Assembly: GCA_904063045.1 (NCBI GenBank)
Contig: CAJFCJ010000005.1
Coordinates: 4,369,689-4,433,688, forward strand
DNA from: Dimorphilus gyrociliatus
Taxonomy: Eukaryota > Animalia > Annelida
DNA length: 64,000 bases
Direction: 5' to 3'
Made by a program: the position numbers and the translations under genes. Below, one piece after another: positions 15,850-63,500 of the stretch (position 1 is the first letter of the stretch; every line of letters starts with the position of its first letter). Below the pieces are notes generated by a model. It did no database searches. It was given only the letters and a program-made list of their open reading frames with translations, and had not been told where the DNA came from.

Positions 15850-16103
15850 TTAAGCGTGTTTCAAGATGTTGTAGTAGCAGTTGGAGGAACCATTTTCGTG
15901 GCAAGCAGTCTCGTCAACTGGACAACAGTCGTGTTCATCTCCTCTGATTGATGGACAGCATTTGAATCCGGCGTTGCAACAACCAGAAACGGTTGGCTCG
16001 TGCCAGCAGCAAATCTGACTGCCTGGTTGGCAAAAGTTGTCGGCGGGACATCCCCATGCTCTGGTTGTGGTTGGAAGAGTGGTGGCTGCAAAAGGCAAAG
16101 AGT

Positions 16104-16143
<40 letters not shown>

Positions 16144-16198
16144 ACTTACTGCAATAAGCGACAGCAACGAGAGCGGCGAGAGCAATCAACAATTTCAT
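15850..16198 (-). CDS. Secreted single-domain 12-Cys granulin-like peptide (GL1)
   Basis: Exon 1 16198-16150 encodes signal peptide MKLLIALAALVAVAYC; 64-nt phase-1 intron; exon 2 16085-15850 TTLPTTTRAWGCPADNFCQPGSQICCWHEPTVSGCCNAGFKCCPSIRGDEHDCCPVDETACHENGSSNCYYNILKHA*. Confidence 0.9.
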
Positions 16199-26564: not shown

Positions 26565-28072
26565 TCAGTTCTTCGGACCGAAGGCATTCATGAGTTCTAG
26601 ATAAGAAATATAAAGTTAGGAACAGTTAAACGAATAGGAAATGCTTTAGTTTCATTCTCTTTCTAAAACTTACCAATCGGTAGAGGGAATATGATGGTGG
26701 AATTCTTTTCTGCTGATATTTGCGTTAGAGTTTGAAGATATCGGAGTTGGAGAGCTCCCGTAGCCTCGTTTATAACATCGGCTGCTTCTTTCAATGCTCT
26801 AGAGGCGTTTTGTTCACCTTCCGCCGCGATAACCTTTGCTCTAGCGTCCCTGGTCGCTTCTGCCTCTGCCGCCATAGCCCTTTGTAGTTGAACAGGTAGT
26901 CGTACATCCTTAATTTCAACCCTTTCAACTTTAACACCCCATGGATCAGTACCTAATGGGAAGAGACAAATTTGAAGAATGTCTTAGATGGATAATTGGT
27001 AGAAGAAGAGGAAGAGGAAGAGGAAGAAGAAGAAGCAGACGAATGTGATAAAGAAAAACAACCAAAGACTATACAACAAAAAGGTGACTCGCAGTGGTTT
27101 ACTTTCTAGCAGAAACTTACCCTCATCAAGGACAATCTGAAGATGAAATAAAACAATATATAGAGTAAAAATTCAAGATTATATAGTAGAGTATTGGATA
27201 GCAGAATAAAAGAGAAGCAGTCTACTTGTACAGTCTACAACTGTTGCATATACAATATACTGTATATTGTATTCATTTAAATAAAGGTACATTTTACTGG
27301 ATTTGTTTTATTTAGTGTCTGATTCTGTCATTCAATATTTACCTGCATATTATTCGCTACTGTTTCCCTTTCTGTTAGAATATCGCTTAGCGTTTTTGTT
27401 CCTAAAATATTTCTTAATGTTGTTTGGGCTAAAAGGCGAGTTGATCTGGAACAATCTTCCACATTCACTACGGAAATCATTGGATTCGAAATTTTATAAT
27501 AAACAACTGCATCAACCGCAATTGTTACCGAATCCTTTGTTAGAATCTCTTGAGGTGGAACGTCAAAGGAAACCGTACGCAAATCAACTTTGACAAAATG
27601 ATCCAAACAGGGTATAATAAAGAATATTCCGGGTCCTCTAGACCCGGAAAGAACTCTTCCAAGTCTAAACATAACCGCTCTTTCGTATTCCTGTACGAGC
27701 TTTACGCACATGAATATTGAAATTGGAAAAGTTAAAAAGATAAGAAGGAGTGAAATTCCTTTCAGGATTATCTAGTAGCGGGAAAAGAATTATTCATTTA
27801 AGTTATAGCTGAAGAAGGAATAGAATAATTAGATAATTATACTGTAGACTTACACCGCAACATCCAAGACTGCCTCCTCCTCCCTTGATCGTAACATTGT
27901 CGTCTGATTAATTTACAGAGTTAGGTTATTGAAAAAAAGAAAAGAGAAGAGGAAGAAAAGCATTTTTGTTTAAAAGTTGTAACTTTTTCAATTAGAAAAA
28001 GAAACGTATAGAAGATTTAAATAAGATTATTTCTGCATAGCTAACTGATCATTTACCTTTCGAATTATCCAT
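26565..28072 (-). CDS. STOM: Stomatin / band-7 (SPFH) protein, paralogue 1 (273 aa)
   Basis: Exons 28072-28057, 27903-27854, 27771-27343, 27136-27121 (16-nt microexon IVLDEG), 26952-26674, 26596-26565 sum to 822 nt in frame. Motifs GCCG, hydrophobic hairpin with [69 protein letters not shown]. Confidence 0.97.
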
Positions 28073-29507: not shown

Positions 29508-30427
29508 ATGCGAAAGATAGCTACAATCCTTCTTCCACTTTTCGGTATTTTTCATTCATTGCCCTCTTCACCTGTTTCATTAGTCCTATTTTATAGCTTA
29601 CACTCTGGCCAACGATTGCATTGGTAAACCCGACGGAACTCATGTTCACCAAGCTTGTAATTACTATGTAGAATGTCGTAATCAACAAGAAGTTCCCGTC
29701 TATTGTAATCCACCATCGGTTTATAATCATGTGAAGAGAAAATGCGATAAGTAAGTTATATTCTGTTCATTCTATCCGGCAAATTTGTTCGGATAATAAC
29801 GAGAAAATCACCGATCAGTCCTCAGAACACACCACCTCCTTGCGGAGCTGAAGAGAAGTGCGATGGTTTGCCAAACGGAAGGTATCCCCTATTGAATCTT
29901 CAATGCCAATGCTATTTTACTTGTCAAGGAGGCACAAACATTGGAACCCAATGCTGTCCAAATAGTTAATATTTCATTCAATAATTAATCCAAAATGAAT
30001 ATCGTTTGTAATCCATCTTTTCCTTTGAAATTCATTTATATTAGATTTGGTTTGGGATGTATTTACCGATGTATGTAATTGGCCAAATCTAACGCCTCCA
30101 CCTTGCGGAACTAAACCACCAGAGATTCCTCTTCCCACTACAGCAGCACCCCTGCCTACTACTAACACACCAAAGCCTGCTACTACTCAGGGTGCAATTC
30201 CTCAAACAACTTCACAATTTGGCTGTCCGCCTACCAATTTTTGCCAATCAAATCAAATATGCTGCTGGCATAAACCAACTATTTCTGGTTGTTGTAACAG
30301 CGGTTTTAAATGTTGTCCATCGATAAGAGGCGATGACCATGATTGCTGTCCAGTAAATGAAGTCGGTTGTCACGAAAATGGCAGTTCTAATTGTTATTAT
30401 AATATTTTGAGAACATCTAATAAATAA
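29508..30427 (+). CDS. Secreted chimera: 2x CBM14 + Thr/Pro linker + C-terminal 12-Cys granulin-like domain (CB2)
   Basis: Exons 29508-29544, 29597-29750, 29819-29964, 30045-30427. The last exon reads LVWDVFTDVCNWPNLTPPPC..TTAAPLPTTNTPKPATTQ..GCPPTNFCQSNQICCWHKPTISGCCNSGFKCCPSIRGDDHDCCPVNEVGCHENGSSNCYYNIL in one open frame. Confidence 0.92.
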
Positions 30428-34344: not shown

Positions 34345-36473
34345 ATGGAAAATTCCGAAGGTAAGATTATTAGTTATTCTAGTATTTATTCGTTGTAGTT
34401 GCAGCAGCTGTATACGAACGCATACGTAAATATATAACAAAGTCATCTCCATCCTATATACAGTATATGTAAATTGTACTGTATATAAGGATAAACAGTA
34501 TACATATATTCTCTTTACTATACCAAACACGACGGATAAAGAATGAAATTATAAGAAGATTTACAATCTGCCGTGTTTGTACATTCTAATTTAAATAGTA
34601 TAATCCGTATGTAAAGTTTATATTTATCCAGTCTATCTAGGAAACATACCAACTAGTTTGTATATATAGATATACAAGTATATGTAGAGAAGGAATAGAC
34701 GTAAATTATTTATTGTTTTTAACTACTTACTTCTACCAAACATTTAAAAGGAAAAGATTAAGAAGAATGAGGAGCAGAACAGAGAGATGCTTGCCCTTTT
34801 TTTTTAATTAAAAATGAATAGTTCAAGTAACCTTGGAAACGATTTAATAATTTCAATATTCGAATCCTCCTCCTCTCCTTCTTTCTATTGCTAAATTACC
34901 ACCTATTTGGGGAACGGATACAAAAAACAACTACAATATAATTTACCTATCTAGATGGAGAGGGAAAGGGAAATCGATACGAAGGGAACTTTATAGACGG
35001 TGTAAAAGGAATTATTGATTCTTCATGTAAAATTGATTAATGTAATAACGTATGTATTTGTTGACTTGACAATTCATCATTTACTAATAACATTACAACT
35101 TAGAGCGTGTATTGCGTAATAAATTTATAGAGATTTACTTATAATTATCCAATTTTCTGTGTATTCTATCATCAAGTTCAACCGTATTCATAATATCATT
35201 TTTTTTCTTATTTTCTCTCTCTCTCTCTCTCTCTCCCTCTCTCTCGCTCTCTTTAGCAAGAAAATACGATAGTGAAGGCGATGATTCGGGATGTTGTGGA
35301 GTGAGTAGTTTATACATTCATCCATCCATTACATAATTTCTATTGTTCACAGATAATACTCAAAGTTATTTCATTGGTTTTAATCGTTATCACTTTCCCC
35401 ATATCAATTTGTATGACTCTGAAAATTGTACAAGAATACGAAAGAGCTGTTATGTTCAGACTTGGAAGGGTTCTACCCGGAGCCAGAGGACCTGGGATAT
35501 TTTTTATAATACCTTGCCTCGATAATTTTGTCAAGGTTGATTTACGTACAGTCTCCTTTGATGTTCCCCCTCAAGAGATTCTCACCAAGGATTCCGTAAC
35601 GGTTGCCGTAGACGCAGTTGTTTATTATAGAATATCGAATCCTATGATATCGGTGGTAAACGTTGAAGACTGTTCCCGATCGACCCGCCTCTTATCCCAA
35701 ACAACGCTGAGAAATATTTTAGGGACAAAGACCCTAAGTGATATATTATCAGAAAGAGAAACAGTTGCCACCAATATGCAGGTAGGAGAAGGGACAGAGA
35801 TAATGAAAGAAATCTCTAATTAAAATTGGAATAAATTTACTATTCCCTCTCTTCCCCTTACAGAGCGTCCTCGATGAAGGCAAGTCTTTATAAGAGGGAA
35901 ACGGACCTCTCTTTTCTTGTTGTTTATATAGAATACTGTATTTGTTAAACATTAAACAAACAAACATAACGAATGTTACATTCGTTCTATAAAAATCTAT
36001 ATACAGCGCATAAAGTCAGAATGATTATTTACCCCATTCGCTTTTATATTTAGGAACCGATCCGTGGGGTGTTAAGGTTGAAAGAGTGGAAATAAAAGAC
36101 GTTCGTCTACCAGTTCAGCTGCAAAGAGCTATGGCGGCGGAAGCCGAAGCAACTAGAGATGCTAGAGCTAAAGTAATTGCGGCCGAAGGTGAACAAAATG
36201 CCTCTAGAGCACTAAAAGAAGCGGCCGACGTAATAAGCGAAGCATCGGGTGCCCTTCAGCTAAGATACCTACAAACACTCACACAAATATCGGCAGAGAA
36301 GAATTCGACAATAATCTTCCCTCTGCCAATTGGTTAGTCATTTATTTCTATTCAAATATTTATAATCAAAATTCTTCTCTTGTAAGAATTTCCTCTTTTT
36401 TGGCGTCAATTTTTCAATCATTTCCTTCTCTATTCCAGAATTGATGAGTGCTTTTATCGAAAGGAAGAAATAA
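34345..36473 (+). CDS. STOM: Stomatin / band-7 (SPFH) protein, paralogue 2 (272 aa)
   Basis: Exons 34345-34360 (MENSE), 35257-35300 (..SGCCG), 35353-35781, 35864-35879 (16-nt microexon SVLDEG, GC donor), 36054-36332, 36439-36473 sum to 819 nt in frame. Same exon layout as paralogue 1. Confidence 0.97.
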
Positions 36474-49300: not shown

Positions 49301-50582
49301 CCCATTTAAGAAATACTTTAATAAATTTGTAGTTCTTGCAGCAATTTTTGCAGTTTCTCTCGTATCCTTTCTATTTCCGTTGTTTGGTCTATTATTAAAT
49401 GAGGTATACAGTATAAACGGGGGAGGGCAGTGGGAGAAACAAACAACCCTTATTAGGGTACAGGGGTTTTTGAATGTTTGTCGCCTCCCTCTATCCAAAT
49501 TGTATAATTGTAAACTGAGACATTTGAAATATTGAACTTAAACTTGTTTATTGCTTTTCTCTGTAGGACTACTTTTCAGATTCACCTCTTTGTTTCAAAT
49601 TCTTTGTTAGAAACGATAAAAGGGCGAATGGTTGGCAGTTGATTTTCTTTAATTATACCATCTATTTCTTTCTATTAAACCTTTTAATATGCTTTTTTTA
49701 TTTCCTTATTTGGAGAGAGTTGTATATTCATAAAAAAGGAATTAAGAAAGATATGAACATGTCGATTAAAATGAGTTTGTCACTTCGTATCTTTGCTACT
49801 TCTTTCGTTAATTTTCTCCATTGTATACTCTATTCATTCATAGGTGAACGATGGAATATTTCTACGCAAAAAGACTAATTAATTACCATTTTTAGGAATA
49901 AAAGCAGCTTTTTTTAAACTCGAATTAAACTACAAACAAGAACTCATCTCCCTCGGATTATCATTGTTTCTACATTTAGTTCTTAATCCTATAGTACTTT
50001 CGTACGGCGAATGGAGAGATTACGTTTCATTTAGAAGAGTGGCGTTGAATAGACGAAGGGAAATTTTTAAAAATAAAATCATTCAAGAAGAAGCTGAAAA
50101 ATGTAGATAAAATTTTCAAATGGGTTCTTTGATCTTTAAGAATTTTGCAGTCGGACAAAAAACATTTTTCATTATTACAGATTTGCAGTTTACTGTGAAA
50201 CAAATTGAATTCAATATTTGGCCATTTAAAATAGAAACAACTTCCAATAGCATCATTTTAAATGAAGAATTCTTTATGAATTTCACTTATTATAAATGTA
50301 TTGAATGCATTCTTATTGCATTGAAATTCTCTCATCAGAATAACTTTTCTCCTAATGGAAAAATACAAATAGAGCATATACATGTTCAAGTTTGTACACA
50401 TAACTAATCCACTATGATTATGAAATGGAGTGAAATTCATCTTTTTACAGGATGGAAAATTCTATCTATCATCGACGAATTACGTTTTAAAGAATGATAT
50501 AAAGGAAAAAGATGATATTCTCTCTTTTGGATTATTAGTTCGAAAATTCCTTCAACAGAAATTCTTGTTAACAACAAATTGA
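43331..50582 (+). CDS. GRL101-like receptor A: SRCR-like/CTL-like ectodomain, about 6 LDLa, LRRs, 7TM, C-terminal kinase-like tail
   Basis: SRCR-like at 44989-45240 (GNLETFVNNKEW..TCNYFGFKSG..LKCERNHTQLSDC), CTL-like at 45430-45660 (CYKK..AKRECEKKNMTSL), LDLa e.g. CDGIYDCSDASDEINC (about 46400-46610) and CDGINHCWYGDDEINC, LRR + hinge (MFCCK..CRP..TC) + TM1-4 in ORF 48222-49535, TM5-7 exons 49569-50102, tail exons about 50151/50181-50389 and 50451-50582. The start codon and some 5' exons are tentative. Confidence 0.85.
46726..46743. repeat. Interstitial telomere-type repeat (TTAGGG)3 in an intron of receptor A
   Basis: Three perfect units read directly. Confidence 0.9.
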
Positions 50583-50751
50583 ATTGATTTATGAATAGAT
50601 AATCTCTATGATTCTATTAAAATAGCTTTCTTTTCTTTAAATGACCTTATTAATGTTCTAGTTTAGTAAAAGTTGAATGACATTTTGTAAGTAAAGTACA
50701 AAACTTCAATAGGCTTTACAGCCTATTAAATTGAACGGGGCGAAGCGTCGG

Positions 50752-50794
50752 TCAATTCGTTCAATTCGTTCAATTCGTTCAATTCGTTCAATTC
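50752..50794. repeat. 9-bp tandem repeat (TCAATTCGT)x~4.8, preceded by an 8-bp-stem hairpin (AATAGGCT-ttac-AGCCTATT, 50708-50727)
   Basis: Read directly; about 115 nt upstream of the LRR gene ATG. Confidence 0.9.
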
Positions 50795-50908
50795 TCTAAA
50801 ATAGCAGTCTATTGAAATATCTCGTTTTGTCTTTTTTGTAAAATACAACTTTTACCAGTTTTTTTACTTATACTACCTTTATTATCGTTAACATTTATTA
50901 TTAGAATT

Positions 50909-52672
50909 ATGGCTATTATTTCGTTGAAAGTTTTATCATTGGAGACGATTTTAGAAAATTTAAAACTGTTGGCTATTCAGTGTTTAAGTAATTGTATTCT
51001 CTTACCAGTTCAAATAAGTAATGAAATATTTGAATACATTCATTCAAGAGGAGTTATATTAGGAGGAGAAGAAGTTGTCTTCTTCTCTTCAAAAGTTTCT
51101 TCTCTTACGAGTATTAAACTCGTCGAAGGGCAATTAATTAATATTCAAAATTATGATTTTCTAAAGAATCATCAAATTGAAAGTGTAATTTATGATTTTT
51201 CGGATATAAAAGATTTTATATTCCTCATTGATCCTATTTGTTTGAAAAGTTTATGGATAAAAAATGGATTAAAAAGTGAAAATTCAATCAAATCTGCAGT
51301 TAATTTCATTAAAAAATGTGAAAATCTACAATCGCTCAATCTTAATTGTTACGATGATGGAATTCTAATTAAGAATCTATTCATGGAGACAAAATTCTCC
51401 GATTATTCTTTAAAAACGCTTTGTTTACATAGCCAAACAACGGAATTGTACGAATTGTACAACGATAATCTTCGAGAAATGTTGGAAAATTGTCAAAACT
51501 TGAGTGAAATACAAATAAATTACAATGTTTGGAAGCAAATAGAGACAATTTGTCAAGGTTTACAAACTTCCTACAGCACTTTATCGTCGATTGATATCGA
51601 ATTCAATTCGTTTACTAATCGGCAGATAATCGCTTTGGCGAATTTACTTGATAATTGTAGACAATTAAAGGTATTTAGATTCAATTATCAAACGAATAAG
51701 AACGGCGAAAATACGACGACGAAGAATGATGATATTCTGGAAATTGATAGAATTCTTAACGGTCTTGCGAATTCGTGCGAAAATCTTCAAGAAATCAGCT
51801 TAATCATTAACGATTATACATTCAAGGAAAACGATAGAAATTTAATCAATTTGTTGAATAATTGCAGAAATTTGCAAACAATTCAACTATCATTCAAAGA
51901 TGTAGACATTTATAGTAATTTGGGCAAAATGGCGCCATTTTCTAAATTGAATAAAGTCAATGTAAAATGTTCAAACGGCGAAGAATTAAAGTACGTTGGA
52001 GATTTTCTATCAGTTTGTCATCATATACAAACAATTGTAATAGATATTAGCTTCGATGTGGGCAGATACCTTAAGGGTATTTGCAATAGTTTGACAAATT
52101 CTTGTCGTACACTTACAAACATTAATCTTTCCGGTTTATTGATGGCAAACGAACATATGCAACATTTTGCAGATTTGGTAATGAATTGCAACAGCTTGGA
52201 ATCTATTGAACTTACTTTGGCCGAGATTGGAAAAGAAGCTGAAATGATTTGGAATAGTTTAACTCCGTCTAAGAATAATCTGACTAATTTGAAACTATGC
52301 GTAGCTTTCTCCATAAATACCAATGACGCTAAATGCTTGGCTCAATTCCTTTACTGTTGCAGATGTTTACAAAAATTTGAATTACTTTGCAATAACGTTA
52401 GAGAAACTGCAATTATTGAAATTTTGAATGGTTTACTACCGTCTTGTCAAACGTTGAAATATCTTAAAATACCACTTCCGTTCGACAGAGATCACGGTTT
52501 TCATTTAGTCAATTTTGTAAGTCGATGTAAAATCCTACAAGAGTTGAATATTCTTGGAAATAAACAATTGTTATCTCAAGCAAATAAATTTACAAATGCA
52601 ATCAGAAATTCATGCCGAAAAATTACTAGAATGGAATTTTTCCTATTGGAAAGTGGACTTTTTTCAGTCTAA
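50909..52672 (+). CDS. Intronless 587-aa leucine-rich-repeat protein with a ZYG11/ZER1-like N-terminus (putative BC/VHL box) and RI-like LRRs
   Basis: Single long ORF. The N-terminus SLKVLSLETILENL..LPVQISNEIFEYIHSRG resembles a BC-box/cullin-box region, followed by repeated LxxLLxxCxxLxxIxL units about 27-30 aa apart. Confidence 0.85.
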   Translation: MAIISLKVLSLETILENLKLLAIQCLSNCILLPVQISNEIFEYIHSRGVILGGEEVVFFSSKVSSLTSIKLVEGQLINIQNYDFLKNHQIESVIYDFSDIKDFIFLIDPICLKSLWIKNGLKSENSIKSAVNFIKKCENLQSLNLNCYDDGILIKNLFMETKFSDYSLKTLCLHSQTTELYELYNDNLREMLENCQNLSEIQINYNVWKQIETICQGLQTSYSTLSSIDIEFNSFTNRQIIALANLLDNCRQLKVFRFNYQTNKNGENTTTKNDDILEIDRILNGLANSCENLQEISLIINDYTFKENDRNLINLLNNCRNLQTIQLSFKDVDIYSNLGKMAPFSKLNKVNVKCSNGEELKYVGDFLSVCHHIQTIVIDISFDVGRYLKGICNSLTNSCRTLTNINLSGLLMANEHMQHFADLVMNCNSLESIELTLAEIGKEAEMIWNSLTPSKNNLTNLKLCVAFSINTNDAKCLAQFLYCCRCLQKFELLCNNVRETAIIEILNGLLPSCQTLKYLKIPLPFDRDHGFHLVNFVSRCKILQELNILGNKQLLSQANKFTNAIRNSCRKITRMEFFLLESGLFSV

Positions 52673-52974
52673 TTTTACAAACAAACAAAACAATACACGG
52701 CCCTTTCTCTTTCTCTAATTGGTTTATATAGTTTTTATTAGGAGATGTTTTTTTTTTCTATTGCCAATAACAATTCTTCTTTCTTTCTCTCTTCCTATCT
52801 GTCTGTCTGTTCGAAGAAATCGTCTCATTGTCTATTTCATACAGTAATCTAGTTTAATAGATAATAATTTTTCAACACATATCATTTATTGTTTGTTTTG
52901 TTTGCTTTTGGAATTTTGTTTTAAATATACAATACTATCTTCTATGACAGTTTGTAATAGATTGTAATTGTTAT

Positions 52975-55900
52975 TCATTTCATTTTTTCCTCTTCCTCCT
53001 CATCCTCCTCCTCCTCCTCGTTCTCCTTCTCTTTTAGGAATCTCTTGAAAAACAAACCAATGTGAAAAATTTCTCTCTTCTCTATCAATTCATTCAAAGC
53101 GATAAAATTGTTTGCAATTACGTAATATTCCTTTTTTCTTTTCTGTTAAAAAACGACACATTTTTCATCTTCTTCTTCTTCTCTTTCCTCGCTACGGTAA
53201 ATGAAAAGATAAAGAAGAAAAAGAAAAAAGAACAACCTGAAAATGAATGTTTCTCACATTCAAATGAAAATCAAATGCCAAATTTATTTGATGAATAAAT
53301 GAATAGGCTTGTAAAATATTCCTAAAACAATTAATATATTCAAAGTTATCTTTCAGCCTATCCATCAGCTCAATAGATCTCGGTTTCTTTATGTATTCAT
53401 AATAGACAACAATATGATTAGAGTAGGCTTCCTCTATGAGTATGTTAACTAAATATCAATAGTAAAATATATGGCTATGTTTAGTAGATAAGAAACGAAT
53501 ATATAGAAAATTGCGAATACAAACATAGACGGAAGCATTCTTTTCTCTTTTCGTCAATTAGAGATTGTCTTGAAAAAAGAAAATTCTTTTATTGAGAGAG
53601 AGAAGGGGAATTGAAAGAAAACAAACTTTTCCTGCAATTTAATAGCCTTCTTCTGCTTTCGATAAAATGATAATTCGGAAAAAGTATATATCATTGGATT
53701 CAATATTGAATTGAATGGAACGAGAAAAATGATGACTATAGCGTAAATATCATTGTTTAAATGTAATTCTTTAAACGTTGATATTATCCCTAAAAGTGAA
53801 ATTGGAGACCAACATAATAAATTCGTTAAAACGATTATTATAATTGTTTTTGTTAGTTTTAATTGAGTTTTTGCGTGCGTTTTTGAATCTTTCCAAGCCA
53901 TCATTGATTTCCTTACTTTCATTAATAAACTGGTATAGAATCCGCTATTAATAATACTAATTAAAAGTGTAAATACTCCGAAAATGAGGAAAGAAAAGAT
54001 CCAGCCTTCAGTCTTTTCTCCGCCCACTTGAATATTAAAACAGATTGGTGACGCCGAATAGAAATTCTAGAAATAAACAAACAAACAAACGTAAAATTTC
54101 CAACAGAAACGCTATTCAAGCCTTTTATAAACCTTAAACATTAATAATGGTACTATGCCGATTAGCAGGGAAAATGATACCAACAATATTGTCATATGAT
54201 AAGCGTACTTTGTTAAAAAAGATGTATAATTTGGACGGAGGATGACTCTATACCTTTCCAAAGTTAACAGTAATATACTCAAAGACGACATAACTAGTGA
54301 GCTGGTCATTAAAACTCCAACAAATTTACACAACCAGAATGCTTTCCATTTTTCTTCATTTTCCAAAAATGTTCCATAAAATTTTAAATCTACGCAAGCG
54401 ATTACCAGAACATAAAATGATGTGAAAGTATCGCCAAACACCAGACAAAGTCTATAGGATTTCGAAGGTCTGTCCGAACTTAATATACAATATATTGATA
54501 TACAATTCAAGCATACTCCAACAATTCCTATCAGCCAAAATGATACGCGTAGAAAGGTTGAACTCAATAGGTTGGAACAAGTTTTAAAATACGAAGAATC
54601 AGGCCTACAAGTGACGTCTTTTCCCAAAAATTTCCAAGTTAAACAGCAAAGTTTATAGCTGTTACTAAATAGTCTTGTCAAACTTTCAAGGTTCCTAACG
54701 ATATAGTAGCTACTTTCCGATGGAAATTTTGTACCATTAAGATGAAGTTCGTTCAAAGAGGATAAAGAGTTGAATGATAATTCTGAAATAGCATCTAGGC
54801 GGCAATTCGTCATTCGAAGAACTTTTAGCAGAGTTAACCTCTTGAAACTCTCTCTACCTATACTAATTATCTTTGTTTCTGAAAGGTCAAGGTAATAGAG
54901 ATGTTGAGAAAATGAAATTATTGTTGAATTTATCGATTGTAAAGGATTTCTAGACAAATCCAAATATTGTAGAGCCAACGTTGAATTAACGTTGAAAAAC
55001 GATAGGTTATAAAGATAATTATACTGTAAAGCCAATATAAAAACATTCGGAGCGTAAATGGTCGATTCTTTTAACAAACGATTTCTAGTTATATTTAGAA
55101 TTGTTAAAGAATAGGCTTTATGAAAATTTTCCATCATAAATTCTCCGTTTAATTCAATCTTTTTATATTTTTCGTTATAAATGAATATCTGCTTTCCCAT
55201 TTCAATTCTACATTCAATTTCGAATGGAAGAGATTGACGACTTTTACACGAATCTGACGCTGTTATCAACGAATTATAGCAGTATAATTCGTCACTTCCT
55301 CTTATACAATCCTTAATTCCGTTGCAGAGATTCTTATTCGGCAAATATAAATATTCCATTCTACATTTGAAAAATCCTTTCAATACAAAATTCTCTTGAA
55401 AAGAGAAAAGGGGAAAGGATGGAAGGAAAGAATTAATTCTTATCTAAAGAATAACAAGCAGTTGAAAATTACCGCAATTCTCTTCGTCGTCTTCATGAAA
55501 ACAATGATTTATTCCATCGCAAATGAATCTAATAGAAATACAATTATTCGCTATTTGACACTTGTATTCTCCTCTTTCGCAATTTGTTCTTATCGAACTG
55601 ATTAATGGTAATTCAGTTGTTCTATTCCCATATACATTATAGACTTGAACAATCGAATTAGCTTCATCGTATATATAACCTTCTTCCATTTCAAGTCCAA
55701 CACGCATATATTTACAACTAATCGATTCATTGCATAATATTTCAATTGGAAAGCAAACCTTTTGACATTCGAATTGTCTGATTGGATTACAATCTAAGCG
55801 GAGAATTTTCTTCTATTAATTCAATTATACTGTTAACTTGTTGTTGTTTACTTTACTTTGTCTATATTTAACGTCAATAGAATTCTTTGAATAGCAATTC

Positions 55901-58900
55901 TCATCGCTTAAATCCAAACAGTTTCTCTTCTGATCGCATACTTTACTCGAATGAACGCATTGGCCACTCTTACACTTTCTATAGAATAAGATTAACTGTT
56001 CAATTTGATTGATTTTTCTATTAATCTCTTAATCTCTACCTTTCGTCTTTATCGCATTTACGCTGCTCTGCAAAATTCATCAAACATTAATTGGAGGACG
56101 ACAGGTAAAAACATCTGAAAAATAAAAATACCGCAATTTTCTTCGTCCTCGTTATAAGGACAATCTTGGTGATAATCGCAAACTAACGTATAACTGATAC
56201 TTGTATTCGAACGATGGCATTGAAATTGCGATAGAATAGAATTATTACAATTCTCATCTTCGTACGATGGACAATCGTAAATTCCATCGCACAAATAAAC
56301 AATATTTATGCAAATTTCATCTTTCGAACAATAATAACCGTTACTCGAACACTTGAACTTTTGGAATTCAAGTTTAAAATTGTTGAAAGTATCTTTTCGT
56401 TTCATTTCTTTTCAAGGAAAAAAAGAGAAAAGTTTGTTTTTTTAAAAAAAAGAAATAAAAGAATTCTTCCAACTCGTAGCATGTTGACAAAAATAAAGCC
56501 TATTCGGTTGAATATTACACTGTTTCGCCAATTTAAAACGATACATTTCCATACATTTTGAAGAGAATTGAATAAAATATGGTTTTAATTTATGAAAGTA
56601 ATTGTTAAAGCATGTCTTGGAGTTATTGGCAAAATAGAACATTGGATAGTTTGCGTAAGTTACTAAATTCAATTCGTTTCTTTTATTCAATACTCGAGTA
56701 TGAGCTAAACGGATATAGTATTAATAATATTGTATAGACTGTATATTCTGTATACTATAATTTATATAGTTTATCTATTAATCTCTTACAAACCAGTGAC
56801 ATACTTGACCAATCTTGTAGTAAGGCCTAATATTCGAACGCCAGTGTTGAGAAAAGTAATTGTAAAACCTTTATAGTGTGTCGGTATATCTGCAAGGTGT
56901 AGATCGTACTCTTGGCAACTCTCTTCCATTTGTTGAACGGTTAATTCTCTATTGGAAATGATGGACAAATAGCAAACGTGATGTATGGAGAAAGTGTTGT
57001 TTCCTTTGCAAGCGATAGACGTAGATGGAGCTAAAGAAGGCAAAAAATGGCGATCGACTATTAAAGCTCTTATTCTATTCTAATCCAAGATTTTTAACCA
57101 TAATCCTTTGCCTGGTAGCATTTAACATGTAGTCTGGGTACCTTTTTTAATTGATCAGGCTCTAATGGGTCTGTTGAGCTGCGTGCAATACAATTGATCG
57201 AATTAATTAATGGTACATAATACAATACAAACTGATTATATACAATATACGTGATATCTTACTAACACTCTACTAAATGTACAATTTTTCAAGTTTTCTC
57301 CATCATTCGCTCTGCAAACTAATGACCCATTTCTATAACAGATAAAAAATCAATAATATAAGTTATTAGTCTGCTTATTCACATTGATTAGCTCACTTAT
57401 CATAATCAAAGAACGAATCGCTAAAGAGATACTCTGAATAGACGTTTTCATCGCCATTCTGTACGACTGTACCGTCTTCAAATCCATAATATAGACAAAC
57501 AGCCTTTACGTCTCTAGATGATACGGGAAAGTAATAAACCCAACCGATGTCGCCTTCGAACCTTTGAAAGGAACCTTTGTATTCGGAGTACGAATGATTC
57601 TTATCTAATATAAAGCCTTTATGATTTATCAATCTAACAAGAAAACCTGAAATTGATACAACAAGACTGTTGAACTGTATAAAATAATAGGATATAATTC
57701 TATCAATACCGATATCGTTCATATCGTCCGAACAGTCCAAGAAAAGTAAAAGTACAAAAGCTTTACTATAGCTCTCCGTAGATCGATTATAATCGTATTC
57801 CATAAAACATTTAGATGTTGTATCGTTAATTTGAGTAAAACTCGTACAACCTCCGTAGAAATAAATCTGGATAGAGACAGAGAGAGAGAGAAATGAAATC
57901 TTAAAACTTCTAAGCAAAACTCAACAAACAAACCTCTGTAAAATTACTCTTAAACATTTTATAACTTTTTCCAATCATCTTCCGTCCGGCATTCATATTA
58001 AAATAATGACAGATTAAACTCTCATAATCCGCTTTAGCGTAATAGTTAACGCTTGAAAAAAATGGTGGCAAAATTCCGTATGATTTAGACACGAAATAGA
58101 TGTTTGTCAAGTTGATTAATGAATTATACATCATTGAAAATAGATGAGTTTGATTTGGATTATTATGAAATTTTTCAATAGTTAAATCTAAATAGCATTT
58201 TAAAAGAGAAATTGAAAACGCACGTGCATAAAAACTTGTCGAATAACCCTAACCCTAACCCTAACCCTAACCCTTGGTTGTGAGATTAATTGTTGACAAG
58301 CTTATCCGTCAATCTCCTAATATAGACAATTTACCTTCTATCTCTCCGTATTGACATTCCATTACGTAACCAAGTTTTAACACATTATCCTCTTGTTCTA
58401 TTTGGGTAAAGTTTATTACCAATCCATTAATAGAGTTGATTTTACAATTTGCATATATGGTTATGTCTGAATGATAAATGAAAAACTCTGATCTCTTGCA
58501 CAATTCTCTCCTAAATTGTTCACTTTCGGCAATATGAAAGTTATATTTTTGGTATCTTAACAAAATGAAAGTTTTGTACGAATAAAAGTCTAAAAAAATG
58601 ATAGAAATATTTCAACTTGTGATAAATTTCAATAGGAATTTACAAGGAGTTTTTCTCTTAAAGCATTTTAAACAAATTCCCATTTCTATTGTTGTACCAT
58701 TCTCTAAAATACTATAATACTATTAATGTTATTACTATCAAGAATTCTAAAGTTTGGCAAAACACTCGCAATTTTGGCGTTTTTCCTTCAAAGTTGATTT
58801 GTATAAATTGACTGGGTTTTGATAAAAGTTGACAAGGAAACGCTAAAGAATGAATATTATCGTATCCCATATTATAGCACATAAATGTTAGATTAGCTCT

Positions 58901-60340
58901 ATAGTCAAAATATTCGACTGGTCCCTTAAAACCAATTGGATAAGTGCCCTGTAAAGTTTTCATATAGACGAGTCCGCTGACAAACGTATGCGTTGAAGTT
59001 TGTATTTCTAAATGAAATTGCTCTCCAACCTCTAGAAACATCAATTAGTTAGTTTGTCTTAATATACACAAAACATCTACCATTCTTATTACAATCGTAA
59101 TTCGGAATATATATAATGTTTTCAACGCTTTTGAAATAATCATATGGACTTTGTCTTGAGAATATACAATCATATCTTCCCTTCTCTTCAATTATAATTG
59201 TACAATTTTCTAGGAAATATATCTGTATGTATTTAACACGATGATAAAATTGGCTAAATGATCAGCTGTAAGAAACAACAAGAACAACACCTCTTCCTGA
59301 GATAATAGGGATAATTCGTAAAGGCTTCTCTTCGAATTTCCCTTCAATGAATTATTGGATAGAGATGAACAAATCATTTTTGGTGGTACATTATCCAAGT
59401 CTGAAGAGCTACCGAAATATGGTGGCAGAATTCCGTGAGTGTTTGAAGAGATATAGACATCAGTCTTATTCAGAAGATACGGATAAAATTGGGAAAAAAT
59501 GAATAAAGCTTCTGCGTTTGAATCCAATTTCTCAATTTTTATATCTGAAAGATTAAAACAGATGAAATGTTTCATTTTTCCTTTCTCTTCTTTTTCTTTG
59601 AAATCATTTACCATTTAAATGGGAAAATCTACATTCTATTGGAGGAGAAGTGTAATTCATAATCGTTTTGAATTTAAATTTCGAGTTTATTATAAATTCG
59701 GTTCTCTTGCAAATGTTCAAGTGACTATGATTTCTTTGAAAAGCCTCATAATTTTTCGTATTTAATCGAAGATAGATACGATATATCGTCCTATTAAATT
59801 CATGAGCGAATATATCTAGAATGGGAAATTATTTGGTGATTTTTTAACAGTAAACTATCGCTAAATAAACGGCAAAATTAACATGGCTTATCCGTTCTGA
59901 AACACTTTAAACATAACAGCCATTTTAAGTTGTTTGAAGAGCCGATTCTAAAAAAATTGCAAGTAATAGATTATATGAATAATTATACACAGTATACAAG
60001 TATACGTGTTGAAACGTGGATAGAAGACACGTTTCGCTATATTCCTATTTAAACAGGGACTCGCCACAGAATGAATACTATCGTATCCTGCTTTGAAACA
60101 TATTTCATTAGTTAAATTTAATTGTAATCTTTCAAACGCAATTTGATATTGCCGATAAGCTTTTGGTGAAAATTTCACAAAAGCCTGACCATAGACGCTA
60201 CTATCCGATTCCTTGATAATTTCTAAAGAATACGTAAAATTCTCAATTATATTGTAGAGAAATGAATATTTATATTGTAATAAATGTATTATTATGGTTA
60301 AAAGCAAGTTTCTTTCGCGTATATTCATAAATTTCATCGT
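52975..60340 (-). CDS. GRL101-like receptor B: duplicated N-terminal module, SRCR-like, CTL-like, about 6 LDLa, LRRs, canonical 7TM, C-terminal kinase-like tail
   Basis: Signal-like MKFMNIRERNLLLTIIIHLL; SRCR-like VRLINHKG..KG..W..DVKAVCLYYGFEDG (about 57420-57650); CTL-like CYLS..EESCQEYDLHLADI (about 56800-57040); LDLa (55444-56400); LRR/hinge/TM1-4 (54112-55383, LERY); TM5-7 (TNLLCWSP, NSILNPMIY); tail exons 53568-53525, 53448-53237, 53142-52975. Confidence 0.9.
58244..58273. repeat. Interstitial telomere-type repeat (TAACCC)5 in an intron of receptor B
   Basis: Five perfect units read directly. Confidence 0.95.
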
Positions 60341-60565
60341 CAACAATTTTACAACGAACGACGGAAGATGATAATGTCCAGTTGGATAAAGATAAATGAA
60401 AAAGAGACGAACAAAACGAACAAAACGTGTCTTTTATTTAATTGCAGTTTGAAGGAAGAAAGAAGGATTAGATTTCTAATTGAAACGTTCTAATTACAGA
60501 AATTACATCAATTTCTCAATTAAATTCATCTTTTTAATAGACAATGAAGAGATTGAAGAGATTAA

Positions 60566-63500
60566 TTATTTTGTAGAATTTTCTGAACAGTTTTTATTGA
60601 CGTTATTGAAAAGTAAACATTTTTCAATGTTTAAGTAGAATTTATATTTTTTATTTACCTGTTTTCTTAATACATTTCTTGTAAATATGCCTAATGAAAG
60701 AATGTCGTCCTTATCGTTTGTACCATTTAAAGGTGTGAATTTCCTCCAAATCAGAAAGCAACCTTTTCTGGAATTCTGTTCAATAATAACAACAACAACA
60801 CAATTTCTTATAAACAAATGTTATTCTTATTGGCAAACCGAAATAGAAATGTTCTTTTCCATTATTTCATCGTCAAAGGCAAACGAGTATTTGTGAGCAA
60901 AACATAACGCTATACATATATGCCTAATGTATCTTGTGTGGTTGGAAGAATGAAAAAATCGTTTAGAAATTGAAGATAATTCCCTATATTGAAACTTATC
61001 CGAAAAGATTATTTGATGAGAGAAAGACTTTTCCATGAATGTCAAAGCTGTGTAAAGAAGAAAAATGATCAATTCTATAGAAAGAGGAATAAAGCTCATT
61101 TCCCTGTTCACCCTCCCCCTGCCCCTCCTCCCCCATTAATAAGAAAAGGCAATTACTGTTCGTGTAAAAGTCTTCTTCCACCTTCTTTAGAACTTCTTCC
61201 CTAATTTATCATCATCAAATGAAATAGGCAAATCGTGAAAATTGCATCTTTTCGTACACACTTACATTCGTCGAGTATTCTTTTGCTTTTTCAATTGTAA
61301 AAACTGCTTTACTCTCACTTTTGAGAATGAAATTGAATAGAAGAACGTAAGACACCAACTAAACGTAATAATTAACCAGCTATGGTCAATTAACAACTTG
61401 AATTTTACAATCTTTAATAACAATTCTATATAAAATCTATATTAAAATCTATTCCGGTATTGAAATCATAAAAGACAAACCTATTAAACTTATTGAAATC
61501 CATAAAATACAATTTATAATTGAAATTAACGAATAGAATATTTGAAATTTTATTGAATAGTCTTTTCCAGTTTTTCTTCTATAGAACGAATTGATTGCGG
61601 TAATTGATAATGAAAATGAAGTGATTGCTGTTGAGATGAGTATAAAAAGTAAATTTGATACGATTAGTTCATTCTTTCCAGTTTCCAAGTTAAAATTCAA
61701 ACAAATATTTGAATTCGAATGATAATCCTAATCCGTAGTTTTAATCAATGTTTAAGGCTTTTTTGTTTAAATATTGAAGAAAATAATTATTCACCTGGAA
61801 AAAACTACTGGAAACTATTGCGGTAGATGCAAATGAGACGGATGTAAACAATAGAAAATTGAAATATTTCCTAACGAATAAAGAAGAGAAACAATAGAAA
61901 TAATGATTTTGATAAAATTCAATATTTGTAAGCAGGAAAACTGAATTCAATGTCCACAAAGAGATTTTCATAATCAATTCAAGGGTTAAACACTGTTTAC
62001 TCGTCTTCCATACAATTTTATTTATTAAAAAATCCTCTCCGTAATTGCTGTCGACAAACGCAATTGTTAAAAAATGCACTGAAATGTAAAAACTAGATAA
62101 AATAGTTAAAAGATTCGAAAGTCTCCTTCTCTTAATCTCCGCCCATAGTAGTAGTAGAATAAGGAAGGCTACTAATTGAGATATTATTCCAGTTATACCG
62201 CAAATGAAACAAAACATTCTCATTGTTTCATTCTTAATTAGTCTTGAACAGGTATCTCTTACGGAATAGATGGATTTACAGACAATACTGTTGAGTTTTT
62301 CAACTAGGCAACAAACATTCTCTTCGTTACTGTATATAACTTTTAAATGTTTTAAATTTGCAATCTCTTCAACTAGTTCTAAAAGTGCAAAGTTTGTCCC
62401 GATTATATTGAATTCTTGGAGAGTTTCCGGCAAATTGAACACTCTTTGCTGTTCATTTTCCCTATGATATTCAACGATTCTCATCACTTTTAAATAGAGG
62501 AAATTCTTTGAGAAAAAATCCTTCTCTATTCCAATGATCCTATTATAGGAGATGTCAATATACGTTAGATGTTTGGAATGGATTATTAGCAAATCTTTGA
62601 GCAGTTGAAATGAATTATGAGAGATATCTAAATGGTAAAGAAGAGGTAATGATTTGCTTTGTAGAAACTGCAAATTTTCCAATTGATTGTATCTCAAATC
62701 AAGATATATTAAATTCGGAGTTGATATTGATAATTTCCATAAAATTCCATTGTTTCTTATTAAAAGAACAGTAAGAAAGTTTAAATGATCTTTTGTTATA
62801 ATTTCTGCATTGCCAATCGATTCGAATTTCTTTCTAGTCTTGTCAATTACAATTCGAGGCGGTGAAGCTATTGTTTGTAAATTACAAACTGTTGCAAACG
62901 GATAAGGTTGTTGGCAATTGATTGAATTTATTGTTGATTCTGTACAAAATAGTTCGTCGCTTCCCCTTAAACAATCAACAATTCCGTCACATATTTTACT
63001 AAAAATGAGGAAAAGATCTTGACCTTTACACTTGAAAAATCCTTCAATATTTAAATTTTCTGCGGAAAGGACAAGTCAACAGTCGATTAATGCTGTTATT
63101 CTATTTTGAATAGTAAATGTCAAAATCTACCGCAATTATCTTCGTCGTCTTTGTAGAAACAATGATAAATTCCATCGCAAATAAACATAATTGATATACA
63201 ATATGTAATTCTTTTACATAAATATTCACCAGTTTGGCAAGCTGTTTTTAAAAACAAAGTATTTGTTTGTTTTTTTAAAAAAAAAAGCCTTGTAATCTAT
63301 TCTTACAATGTATTTTTATGGTATTTTCTTCAGATTTTTCAAAGCCTATAGTAGTCTGTTCAAAAAACGGATTGCCCTGATTATCAGCTTTGCATATAAA
63401 CTCTCTATTACAGAGAAATTGACTTGGAAAACACTGATTGTCGCAGCTAAACTGTAAATCTTTATTGCATCCTGAAAAGAATACAATTTTTGCTCTGTTA

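Follow-up and report, generated by a model that had tools for sequence, protein, structure and literature searches.

The DNA analysed here is a stretch of 64,000 nucleotides from the annelid Dimorphilus gyrociliatus (GenBank assembly GCA_904063045.1, contig CAJFCJ010000005.1, positions 4,369,689 to 4,433,688 of the forward strand), referred to below as the window, whose own coordinates are used throughout. It is AT-rich animal DNA (~30% GC) with short GT-AG introns, and in its 46.8-63.8 kb region lie three genes for receptors, of which A is on the plus strand, and B and C are on the minus strand. Judged from their sequences, these are tandem receptors of the LGR type C/GRL101-like kind, built from LDLa modules, leucine-rich repeats (LRRs) and a seven-transmembrane domain (7TM). 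In each gene, the exon coding for the seventh transmembrane helix (TM7) is followed on the same strand by two more open exons, T1 and T2. The present report concerns the cytoplasmic tails that these exons encode and their relation to protein kinases.

Receptor genes and tail exons

The identity of the receptors was examined by a Pfam scan. In gene B, Ldl_recept_a was found at 52 and 28.5 bits (cut-off 24.1) in the exons 56058-56405 and 55444-55707; in gene A it scored 21.9 bits, slightly below the cut-off, and in gene C the scan gave no Ldl_recept_a match. LRR_8 was detected ahead of the 7TM in A (E 2e-7), B (E 3e-11) and C (E 7e-5, under the cut-off). The 7TM of gene B was recognised as 7tm_1 (52.9 bits, E 4.6e-14); the scan did not recognise the 7TM of genes A and C. 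The exons coding for LRRs and TM1-4 are 28-34% identical between the three genes. When the large exon of gene B was used as query, the closest named relatives of the receptor body were molluscan GRL101-like proteins (24-29% identity); the protein collection searched with this exon contained no predicted protein from this genome, its best match being 29% identical. Gene C is the most divergent of the three, and its TM7 (61266-61385, minus strand) has no NPxxY motif; this receptor may be losing G-protein coupling while retaining its tail.

The last 7TM exons and the tail exons are as follows, with the basis of each in brackets (HMM, hidden Markov model; UTR, untranslated region).

49896-50102, plus strand: gene A, last 7TM exon, TM7 with NPIVLSY and helix 8, phase-1 end at donor GT 50103 (RNA contig, translation)
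50181-50389, plus strand: gene A T1, 70 codons, phase-1 entry, putative alphaD/alphaE-like helix and degenerate catalytic loop (open frame, GT-AG, leave-one-out HMM E 5e-8)
50451-50582, plus strand: gene A T2, 43 codons and stop TGA, putative beta7/8-like stretch and alphaF-like KDDILSFG (leave-one-out HMM E 1.3e-6)
53627-54066, minus strand: gene B, exon with TM5-TM7 (NPMIY) and helix 8, phase-2 end (Pfam 7tm_1, RNA joints 54133/54066 and 53627/53568)
53525-53568, minus strand: gene B mini-exon, 44 nt, phase 2 to 1 (RNA joints 53627/53568 and 53525/53448)
53237-53448, minus strand: gene B T1, 71 codons (RNA joints at both ends; hhalign to kinase alphaE and catalytic loop)
52975-53142, minus strand: gene B T2, 55 codons and stop, acidic end, 3'UTR behind (RNA contig; leave-one-out HMM E 2.3e-7)
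61266-61385, minus strand: gene C, last 7TM exon, 5' border approximate, phase-2 end at donor GTAAGT (DNA letters only)
61157-61200, minus strand: gene C mini-exon, 44 nt, phase 2 to 1, AG before and GTAATT behind (same basis)
60839-61047, minus strand: gene C T1, acceptor 61047 preferred, 61074 also in phase (leave-one-out HMM E 7.9e-6)
60659-60775, minus strand: gene C T2, behind a phase-0 intron at 60776-60838 (leave-one-out HMM E 3e-5)

Thus, T1 comprises about 70 codons and is entered in phase 1, and T2 comprises 40-55 codons up to the stop and is entered in phase 0. All borders of the tail exons in A, B and C are GT-AG, and the intron phases are conserved. Between the TM7 exon and T1, genes B and C carry a mini-exon of 44 nt that passes from phase 2 to phase 1. 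Gene A has no separate mini-exon and its TM7 exon has a phase-1 end, which would fit a fusion of the two exons by loss of the intron; its T1 and T2 are separated by a phase-0 intron (50390-50450, GT..AG). In gene C, the T2 frame stays open as far as 60569, and a GT at 60658 is a possible additional donor. The peptides, exon borders and phases from which an earlier note had drawn these tails were all found in the sequence.

In order to follow the splicing of the tails, sequencing runs were used, of which X1 and X3 were taken as RNA (their contigs are spliced and thin out between genes) and X2 as colinear genomic DNA. The read evidence covers genes A and B; the exons of gene C rest on sequence and homology. 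For gene B, all the predicted junctions were found in spliced RNA contigs: 54133/54066, 53627/53568, 53525/53448 and 53237/53142. The last three correspond to introns of 58, 76 and 94 nt, all introns being GT..AG on the minus strand, and the joint 53237/53142 was present in both X1 and X3. One X1 contig (rec5) finishes exactly with the 44 letters of the mini-exon, and another (rec3) joins 53448-53237 to 53142-50949, passing through the stop at 52975-52977 into the 3'UTR. This junction chain was pieced together from three overlapping contigs, no single contig spanning it, and the X2 genomic contigs are colinear across the same region. The junction from 53627 to 53568 and the 44-nt exon of phase 2 to 1, both proposed beforehand from the sequence, therefore match the RNA contigs exactly. 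An unspliced RNA contig (53419-53554, minus strand) that spans the 76-nt intron, with roughly half as much coverage as the spliced contigs, was also observed; it looks like intron retention or pre-mRNA.

For gene A, a 348-nt X1 RNA contig (rec1) joins 49843/49896; its match to the genome ends at 50102 and its final 22 letters were unplaced. Since the contig leaves the genome at 50102, the apparent stop at 50108 is not part of the transcript, in line with the earlier proposal of a donor (GTAGAT) at 50103 that skips this stop. Two acceptors, 50151 and 50181, had been proposed for this donor; 50181 keeps the frame and 50151 runs into a stop. RNA depth was low over T1 of gene A and zero over T2, and neither the T1 acceptor nor the T1/T2 joint had reads. 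Taken together, the observation of spliced tail exons behind TM7 is confirmed.

Conservation of the tails

Leave-one-out HMMs were used to examine whether the three tails are related. In every case, T1 and T2 of the left-out tail were the top non-training matches among 2,083 six-frame segments, with E values for T1 and T2 of 5e-8 and 1e-6 (A), 7e-4 and 2e-7 (B), and 8e-6 and 3e-5 (C). A profile search of the whole window returned exactly three copies of the tail, each just downstream of a receptor TM7. Pairwise identity among the paralogous tails is 21-37%, as compared with 28-34% for the LRR and TM1-4 exon, and judged by these values the tails appear to be constrained about as strongly as the receptor body.

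The same exon plan was found in a second organism. Locus L001 is a Logan contig of 21% GC (runs SRR23372216 and SRR23372229, identical; span 1-2683) whose receptor exon is 29% identical to that of gene B. Behind this exon follow, in order, a TM7 exon with a phase-2 end, an exon of 44 nt, T1, a phase-0 intron and T2. The mini-exon of gene C has the same length and phases as those of gene B and L001. The similarity of its tail to those of the window is marginal (leave-one-out HMM, E 0.035 for T1 and 0.0016 for T2), and the exon plan is identical. With tails as conserved as the receptor exon and an exon plan recurring in a second organism, the argument for selection made from the DNA alone stands. 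The T1 exon of L001 is listed in the protein collection as an orphan 'gene' of 69 residues (P0011), and a homologous-protein search with the T1 profile gave this exon itself as its sole match.

Kinase ancestry of the tails

The tails had been read as the remnant of a kinase C-lobe, with elements resembling alphaE (subdomain VIa), the catalytic loop (VIb) and alphaF (IX) in this order. A kinase reference set was obtained by scanning IMG/VR for DNA encoding HRDLKPEN, and 64 open reading frames (ORFs) that also contained DFG were extracted and aligned. The four spliced tails (A, B and C from the window, and L001) were assembled, and their alignment was compared with that of the kinases by hhalign in a test specified beforehand. 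The comparison gave a probability of 90.5% (P 1.4e-6, score 43.8). Along the alignment path, the tail helix ending in an invariant His is placed on kinase alphaE and followed by the HRDLKPEN loop; the path then passes over DFG and the activation segment to the P+1/APE stretch and alphaF, with the tail motif K-D-D-I-L-S-F-G lying against kinase x-D-I/V-W-S-L-G. The three elements were thus recovered in the predicted order, and the reading of the tail as a kinase remnant is supported.

This score was set against several controls. Shuffling of columns (n=400) gave a mean of 10.9, a standard deviation of 2.2 and a maximum of 26.9, and the reversed alignment scored 11.7. Shuffling of blocks (n=200) reached at most 40.4, below the real 43.8. 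When each tail was dropped in turn, the probability stayed at 76-93%. Compared separately, T1 alone was placed on alphaE (score 24.2) and T2 alone on alphaF (score 31.4, P 2.4e-5). The tails of gastropod GRL101-like proteins scored 13.5 against the identical kinase profile. Furthermore, a profile of YegI-like bacterial kinases aligned from alphaE through the DFG-equivalent (E 0.011), and T2 there begins on beta7/beta8; no signal was obtained with E. coli YegI itself as the only template. A small tyrosine-kinase set matched the alphaF motif only (P 1.8e-4), and no class, tyrosine or serine/threonine, was assigned to the tails. Tested singly against a kinase HMM with 2,500 shuffles each, the tails of A, C and L001 gave p values of ~0.002, 0.01 and 0.05.

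The alignments also indicate which parts of a kinase would be present. Counted from the alphaE His, the position of the catalytic Asp of HRD is occupied by His in B, Glu in C, Lys in A and Asn in L001. The Asn of subdomain VIb is present in B, C and L001, and its spacing to the DFG-equivalent is normal, but no tail has DFG. From this Asn to the alphaF-like Asp, the tails have 26-28 residues, a recount that replaces the ~24 given before; in PKA there are 49. The proteins stop 10-35 residues past alphaF, and the activation segment with APE and helices alphaG-alphaI are absent. The lack of HRD, DFG and APE, already pointed out from the sequence, was borne out by the tail-kinase alignments. The N-lobe (Gly-rich loop, beta3 Lys, alphaC Glu) is absent too: gene B RNA joins TM7, the mini-exon and T1 directly and rules out further exons between TM7 and T1. 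The stretch ahead of alphaE is long enough for no more than beta4/beta5-alphaD, which align at low confidence. What the tails keep are the His of alphaE and the Asp and Gly of alphaF. In PKA, the corresponding His158 and Asp220 make up the structural core of the C-lobe, where they tie alphaE and alphaF to the catalytic loop.

As the N-lobe, the catalytic Asp, the DFG Asp, the activation segment and alphaG-alphaI are all missing, the tail cannot be an enzyme, and it is predicted neither to bind ATP nor to catalyse. The label of scaffold-type pseudokinase given in the earlier note holds insofar as the tail would be kinase-derived and dead, and is overstated insofar as the N-lobe is missing and little protein is left beyond alphaF. 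On the alignments, the tail falls outside the full pseudokinases and amounts to about half a kinase core.

We consider it fairly probable (about 0.7) that each of the three receptors encodes a conserved, cytoplasmic, non-catalytic half-domain that is derived from a protein kinase and maintained under constraint. Each would carry a C-terminal module of ~110-140 residues, formed by the mini-exon (fused in A), T1 and T2. The module would descend from a eukaryotic protein-kinase domain of which only the middle was retained, probably starting at beta4/beta5-alphaD. It would have kept alphaE, conserved His included, the catalytic loop in degenerate form and the beta6-beta8 spacing, and then lead almost directly to the Asp-x-x-Ser-x-Gly of alphaF. 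The Gly-loop, the VAIK Lys, alphaC, the DFG Asp, ~22-25 residues of activation segment with APE, and alphaG-alphaI would have been lost. Such a module would presumably act as a docking or regulatory unit on the receptor tail; it might bind either a partner protein or the intracellular side of its own receptor. The module may also be the relic of an older receptor-kinase fusion. A bolder version is that the tails are relics of an ancient animal polypeptide in which an LGR-type G-protein-coupled receptor (GPCR) was joined to an active kinase, the surviving half still coupling the receptor to a kinase-type partner beside or instead of G proteins; this we hold to be doubtful.

Several results weigh against a kinase-derived half-domain. 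No single database search reached conventional significance. With single tail exons, Pfam returned nothing at E <= 10, and every match of the T1 profiles to Protein Data Bank (PDB) sequences lay at E >= 0.07. By their identity, however, these sub-threshold PDB matches speak for a kinase. With the three-sequence T1 profile (A1), three of the four were protein kinases at alphaE, the best at E 0.07; the top match was a 354-residue entry (9qj2) in a stretch ending in HFDIRPE, which reads as a kinase catalytic loop, and the next two were CDPK kinases at alphaE. With the four-sequence profile (A3), most of the 76 matches were kinases, all with E above 0.4; for GCN2, CASK, CaMKII and twitchin the match lay at alphaE, and for a group of ERK2 entries lower in the ranking it lay elsewhere. 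On the negative side again, T2 alone found no kinase in the PDB sequences. The T1 profile, searched with hmmsearch against 1.84 billion representative proteins, returned only two spurious repeat proteins, and with no homologue there the tail profile rests on four sequences. The gene B tail alone had no significant score against the kinase HMM (2,500 shuffles), and for gene C, whose TM7 is without NPxxY, the evidence for the tail comes from sequence and homology. Neighbours in the ESM Atlas were kinase fragments for T1 of gene B (0.87), GmrSD_C for T1 of gene A (0.92) and plain rhodopsin clusters for TM5-7 of gene B; these were irreproducible and were taken as noise. Finally, an AlphaFold2 model of T1 alone had a confidence (pLDDT) of 45 and was not usable as a structure, and to our knowledge half a kinase core has not been found to fold by itself.

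Part of this evidence would equally suit a genuine conserved domain without kinase ancestry, namely a lineage-specific, helix-rich module in which two amphipathic helices resemble alphaE and alphaF by chance. The single-sequence and PDB matches are all sub-threshold, the Atlas neighbours differ between paralogues, the model of T1 brought no structural confirmation, and the block-shuffle null, in which local motifs are retained, already averages a score of 29. However, two separately encoded pieces match the two kinase elements expected of them, both the order and the beta6-beta8 spacing are correct, and the collinear score of 43.8 exceeds all 600 shuffles. Moreover, unrelated receptor tails score just 13.5 against the kinase profile, and the residues retained, the alphaE His and the alphaF Asp and Gly, belong to the structural core of the C-lobe. 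A chance resemblance is thus regarded as unlikely. The tail might also be one part of a divided kinase-like fold whose other part is supplied in trans, by a separately encoded N-lobe-like partner or through dimerisation, and could then regain nucleotide binding or allosteric activity. Such a fold would suit the conservation of a half-core that by itself would hardly be stable; there is no direct support for it, no copy has the catalytic Asp or the DFG Asp, the window contains no N-lobe-like ORF, and we rate it as very improbable.

It could also be that only gene B makes a tailed protein, the tail exons of A and/or C being in decay and their proteins ending at or near the TM7 exon. The low RNA depth over T1 and zero depth over T2 in gene A would fit this, as would the stop brought in by the acceptor 50151, and gene C lacks NPxxY and has a 7TM unseen by Pfam. 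Yet T1 and T2 are open and phase-compatible in all three genes at 30% GC, where the chance that a frame of 70 codons stays open is estimated at ~0.3%; the leave-one-out E values for A and C range from 3e-5 to 5e-8, and the gene A RNA contig departs from the genome where the donor was predicted, before the stop is reached. Decay of these exons is therefore quite improbable, and a conserved kinase-derived half-domain in all three receptors is the reading retained here.

Other features of the window and comparison with known receptors

Between genes A and B lies a single-exon ORF of 587 codons (50909-52672, plus strand), which by eye resembles leucine-rich-repeat (RNI-like) proteins; in Pfam no match to it fell below E 0.1. 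Expression is strong (depth 63 in X1 and 34 in X3), and the transcript is convergent with gene B. One RNA contig runs through both, so that their 3' ends overlap or abut. In the spacer between gene A and this LRR gene, a 9-nt microsatellite, CAATTCGTT, is repeated about five times (50745-50795), and the X2 genomic contigs break there. Elsewhere in the window, the plus strand carries a pair of closely similar exons for a TRPC-like pore region (LFWGLFGLT ...; 1522-1893 and 2653-2994, at a distance of 1.1 kb), which could be spliced in a mutually exclusive manner or have arisen by tandem duplication. Stomatin/SPFH-like exons coding for near-identical protein are inverted 8 kb apart (27328-27711, minus strand, and 35374-35823, plus strand). 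Paralogous Cys-rich granulin-like ORFs behind Pro/Thr-rich linkers are likewise inverted (15850-16185, minus strand, and 30047-30427, plus strand).

Lymnaea GRL101, arthropod LGR5 and vertebrate RXFP1 and RXFP2 share with genes A, B and C the LDLa modules, the LRRs and a rhodopsin-class 7TM. The described LGR type C receptors and the gastropod GRL101-like proteins that were checked have, by contrast, short tails unrelated to those of the window. The earlier statement that known GRL101 and RXFP receptors have no such tail thus holds for the gastropod GRL101-like proteins checked. When a Nucella GRL101-like 7TM was used as query, the results were filled by a gastropod expansion with unrelated tails. 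A review of GRL101 by Veenstra does not mention a kinase-like tail (PMC8286064), the D. gyrociliatus genome paper makes no mention of such a receptor tail, and a full-text literature search for pseudokinases combined with LRR-containing GPCRs gave nothing relevant.

Receptor guanylyl cyclases carry an inactive, regulatory kinase-homology domain beneath a membrane receptor. These domains are full-length, bilobal and ATP-binding, whereas the tail described here lacks the N-lobe, the activation segment and alphaG-alphaI. In the GPCR-TK and GPCR-TKL/K fusions, a 7TM and a C-terminal kinase-derived domain are likewise contained in one polypeptide. Such fusions are described from oomycetes, amoebozoans, choanoflagellates and sponges, and GPCR-TKs are reported from sponges and from no other metazoan lineage (PMC12716839). 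They have a full kinase domain that InterProScan detects and belong to other 7TM families, whereas the present receptors combine an LGR 7TM with a half-size, dead module in a bilaterian; the complete C-terminal kinase domain is absent, about half being present, with Pfam silent at E <= 10. The GPCR-PIPKs (Dictyostelium RpkA and Phytophthora GKs; PMC3206951, PMC5784254) are also GPCRs with a C-terminal kinase-type module. That module is a protist lipid kinase domain (PIP5K), whose sequence has no relation to the alphaE and alphaF motifs of the window tails. For animal receptors of this type, we did not find a description of the half-kinase design.

A conserved, transcribed and kinase-derived tail on bilaterian LGR/GRL101-type receptors would extend the theme of GPCR-kinase fusions, and if the tails are indeed relics of such a fusion they would be the bilaterian counterpart of those so far known from protists and sponges. 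Routine annotation misses tails of this kind, whose exons are very small and lie beyond what looks like a stop; in the databases searched, they are absent from all predicted proteins. It has been proposed that GRL101 and the insulin receptor kinase share insulin-like growth factor (IGF)-like ligands (PMC8286064), and if the lost kinase was of the tyrosine type the tails would have a bearing on this proposal. The tail would also be a natural 'minimal' kinase core, from alphaE to alphaF, open to tests of folding and of partners. For an orphan receptor class, a kinase-derived tail suggests an unrecognised output or mode of regulation.

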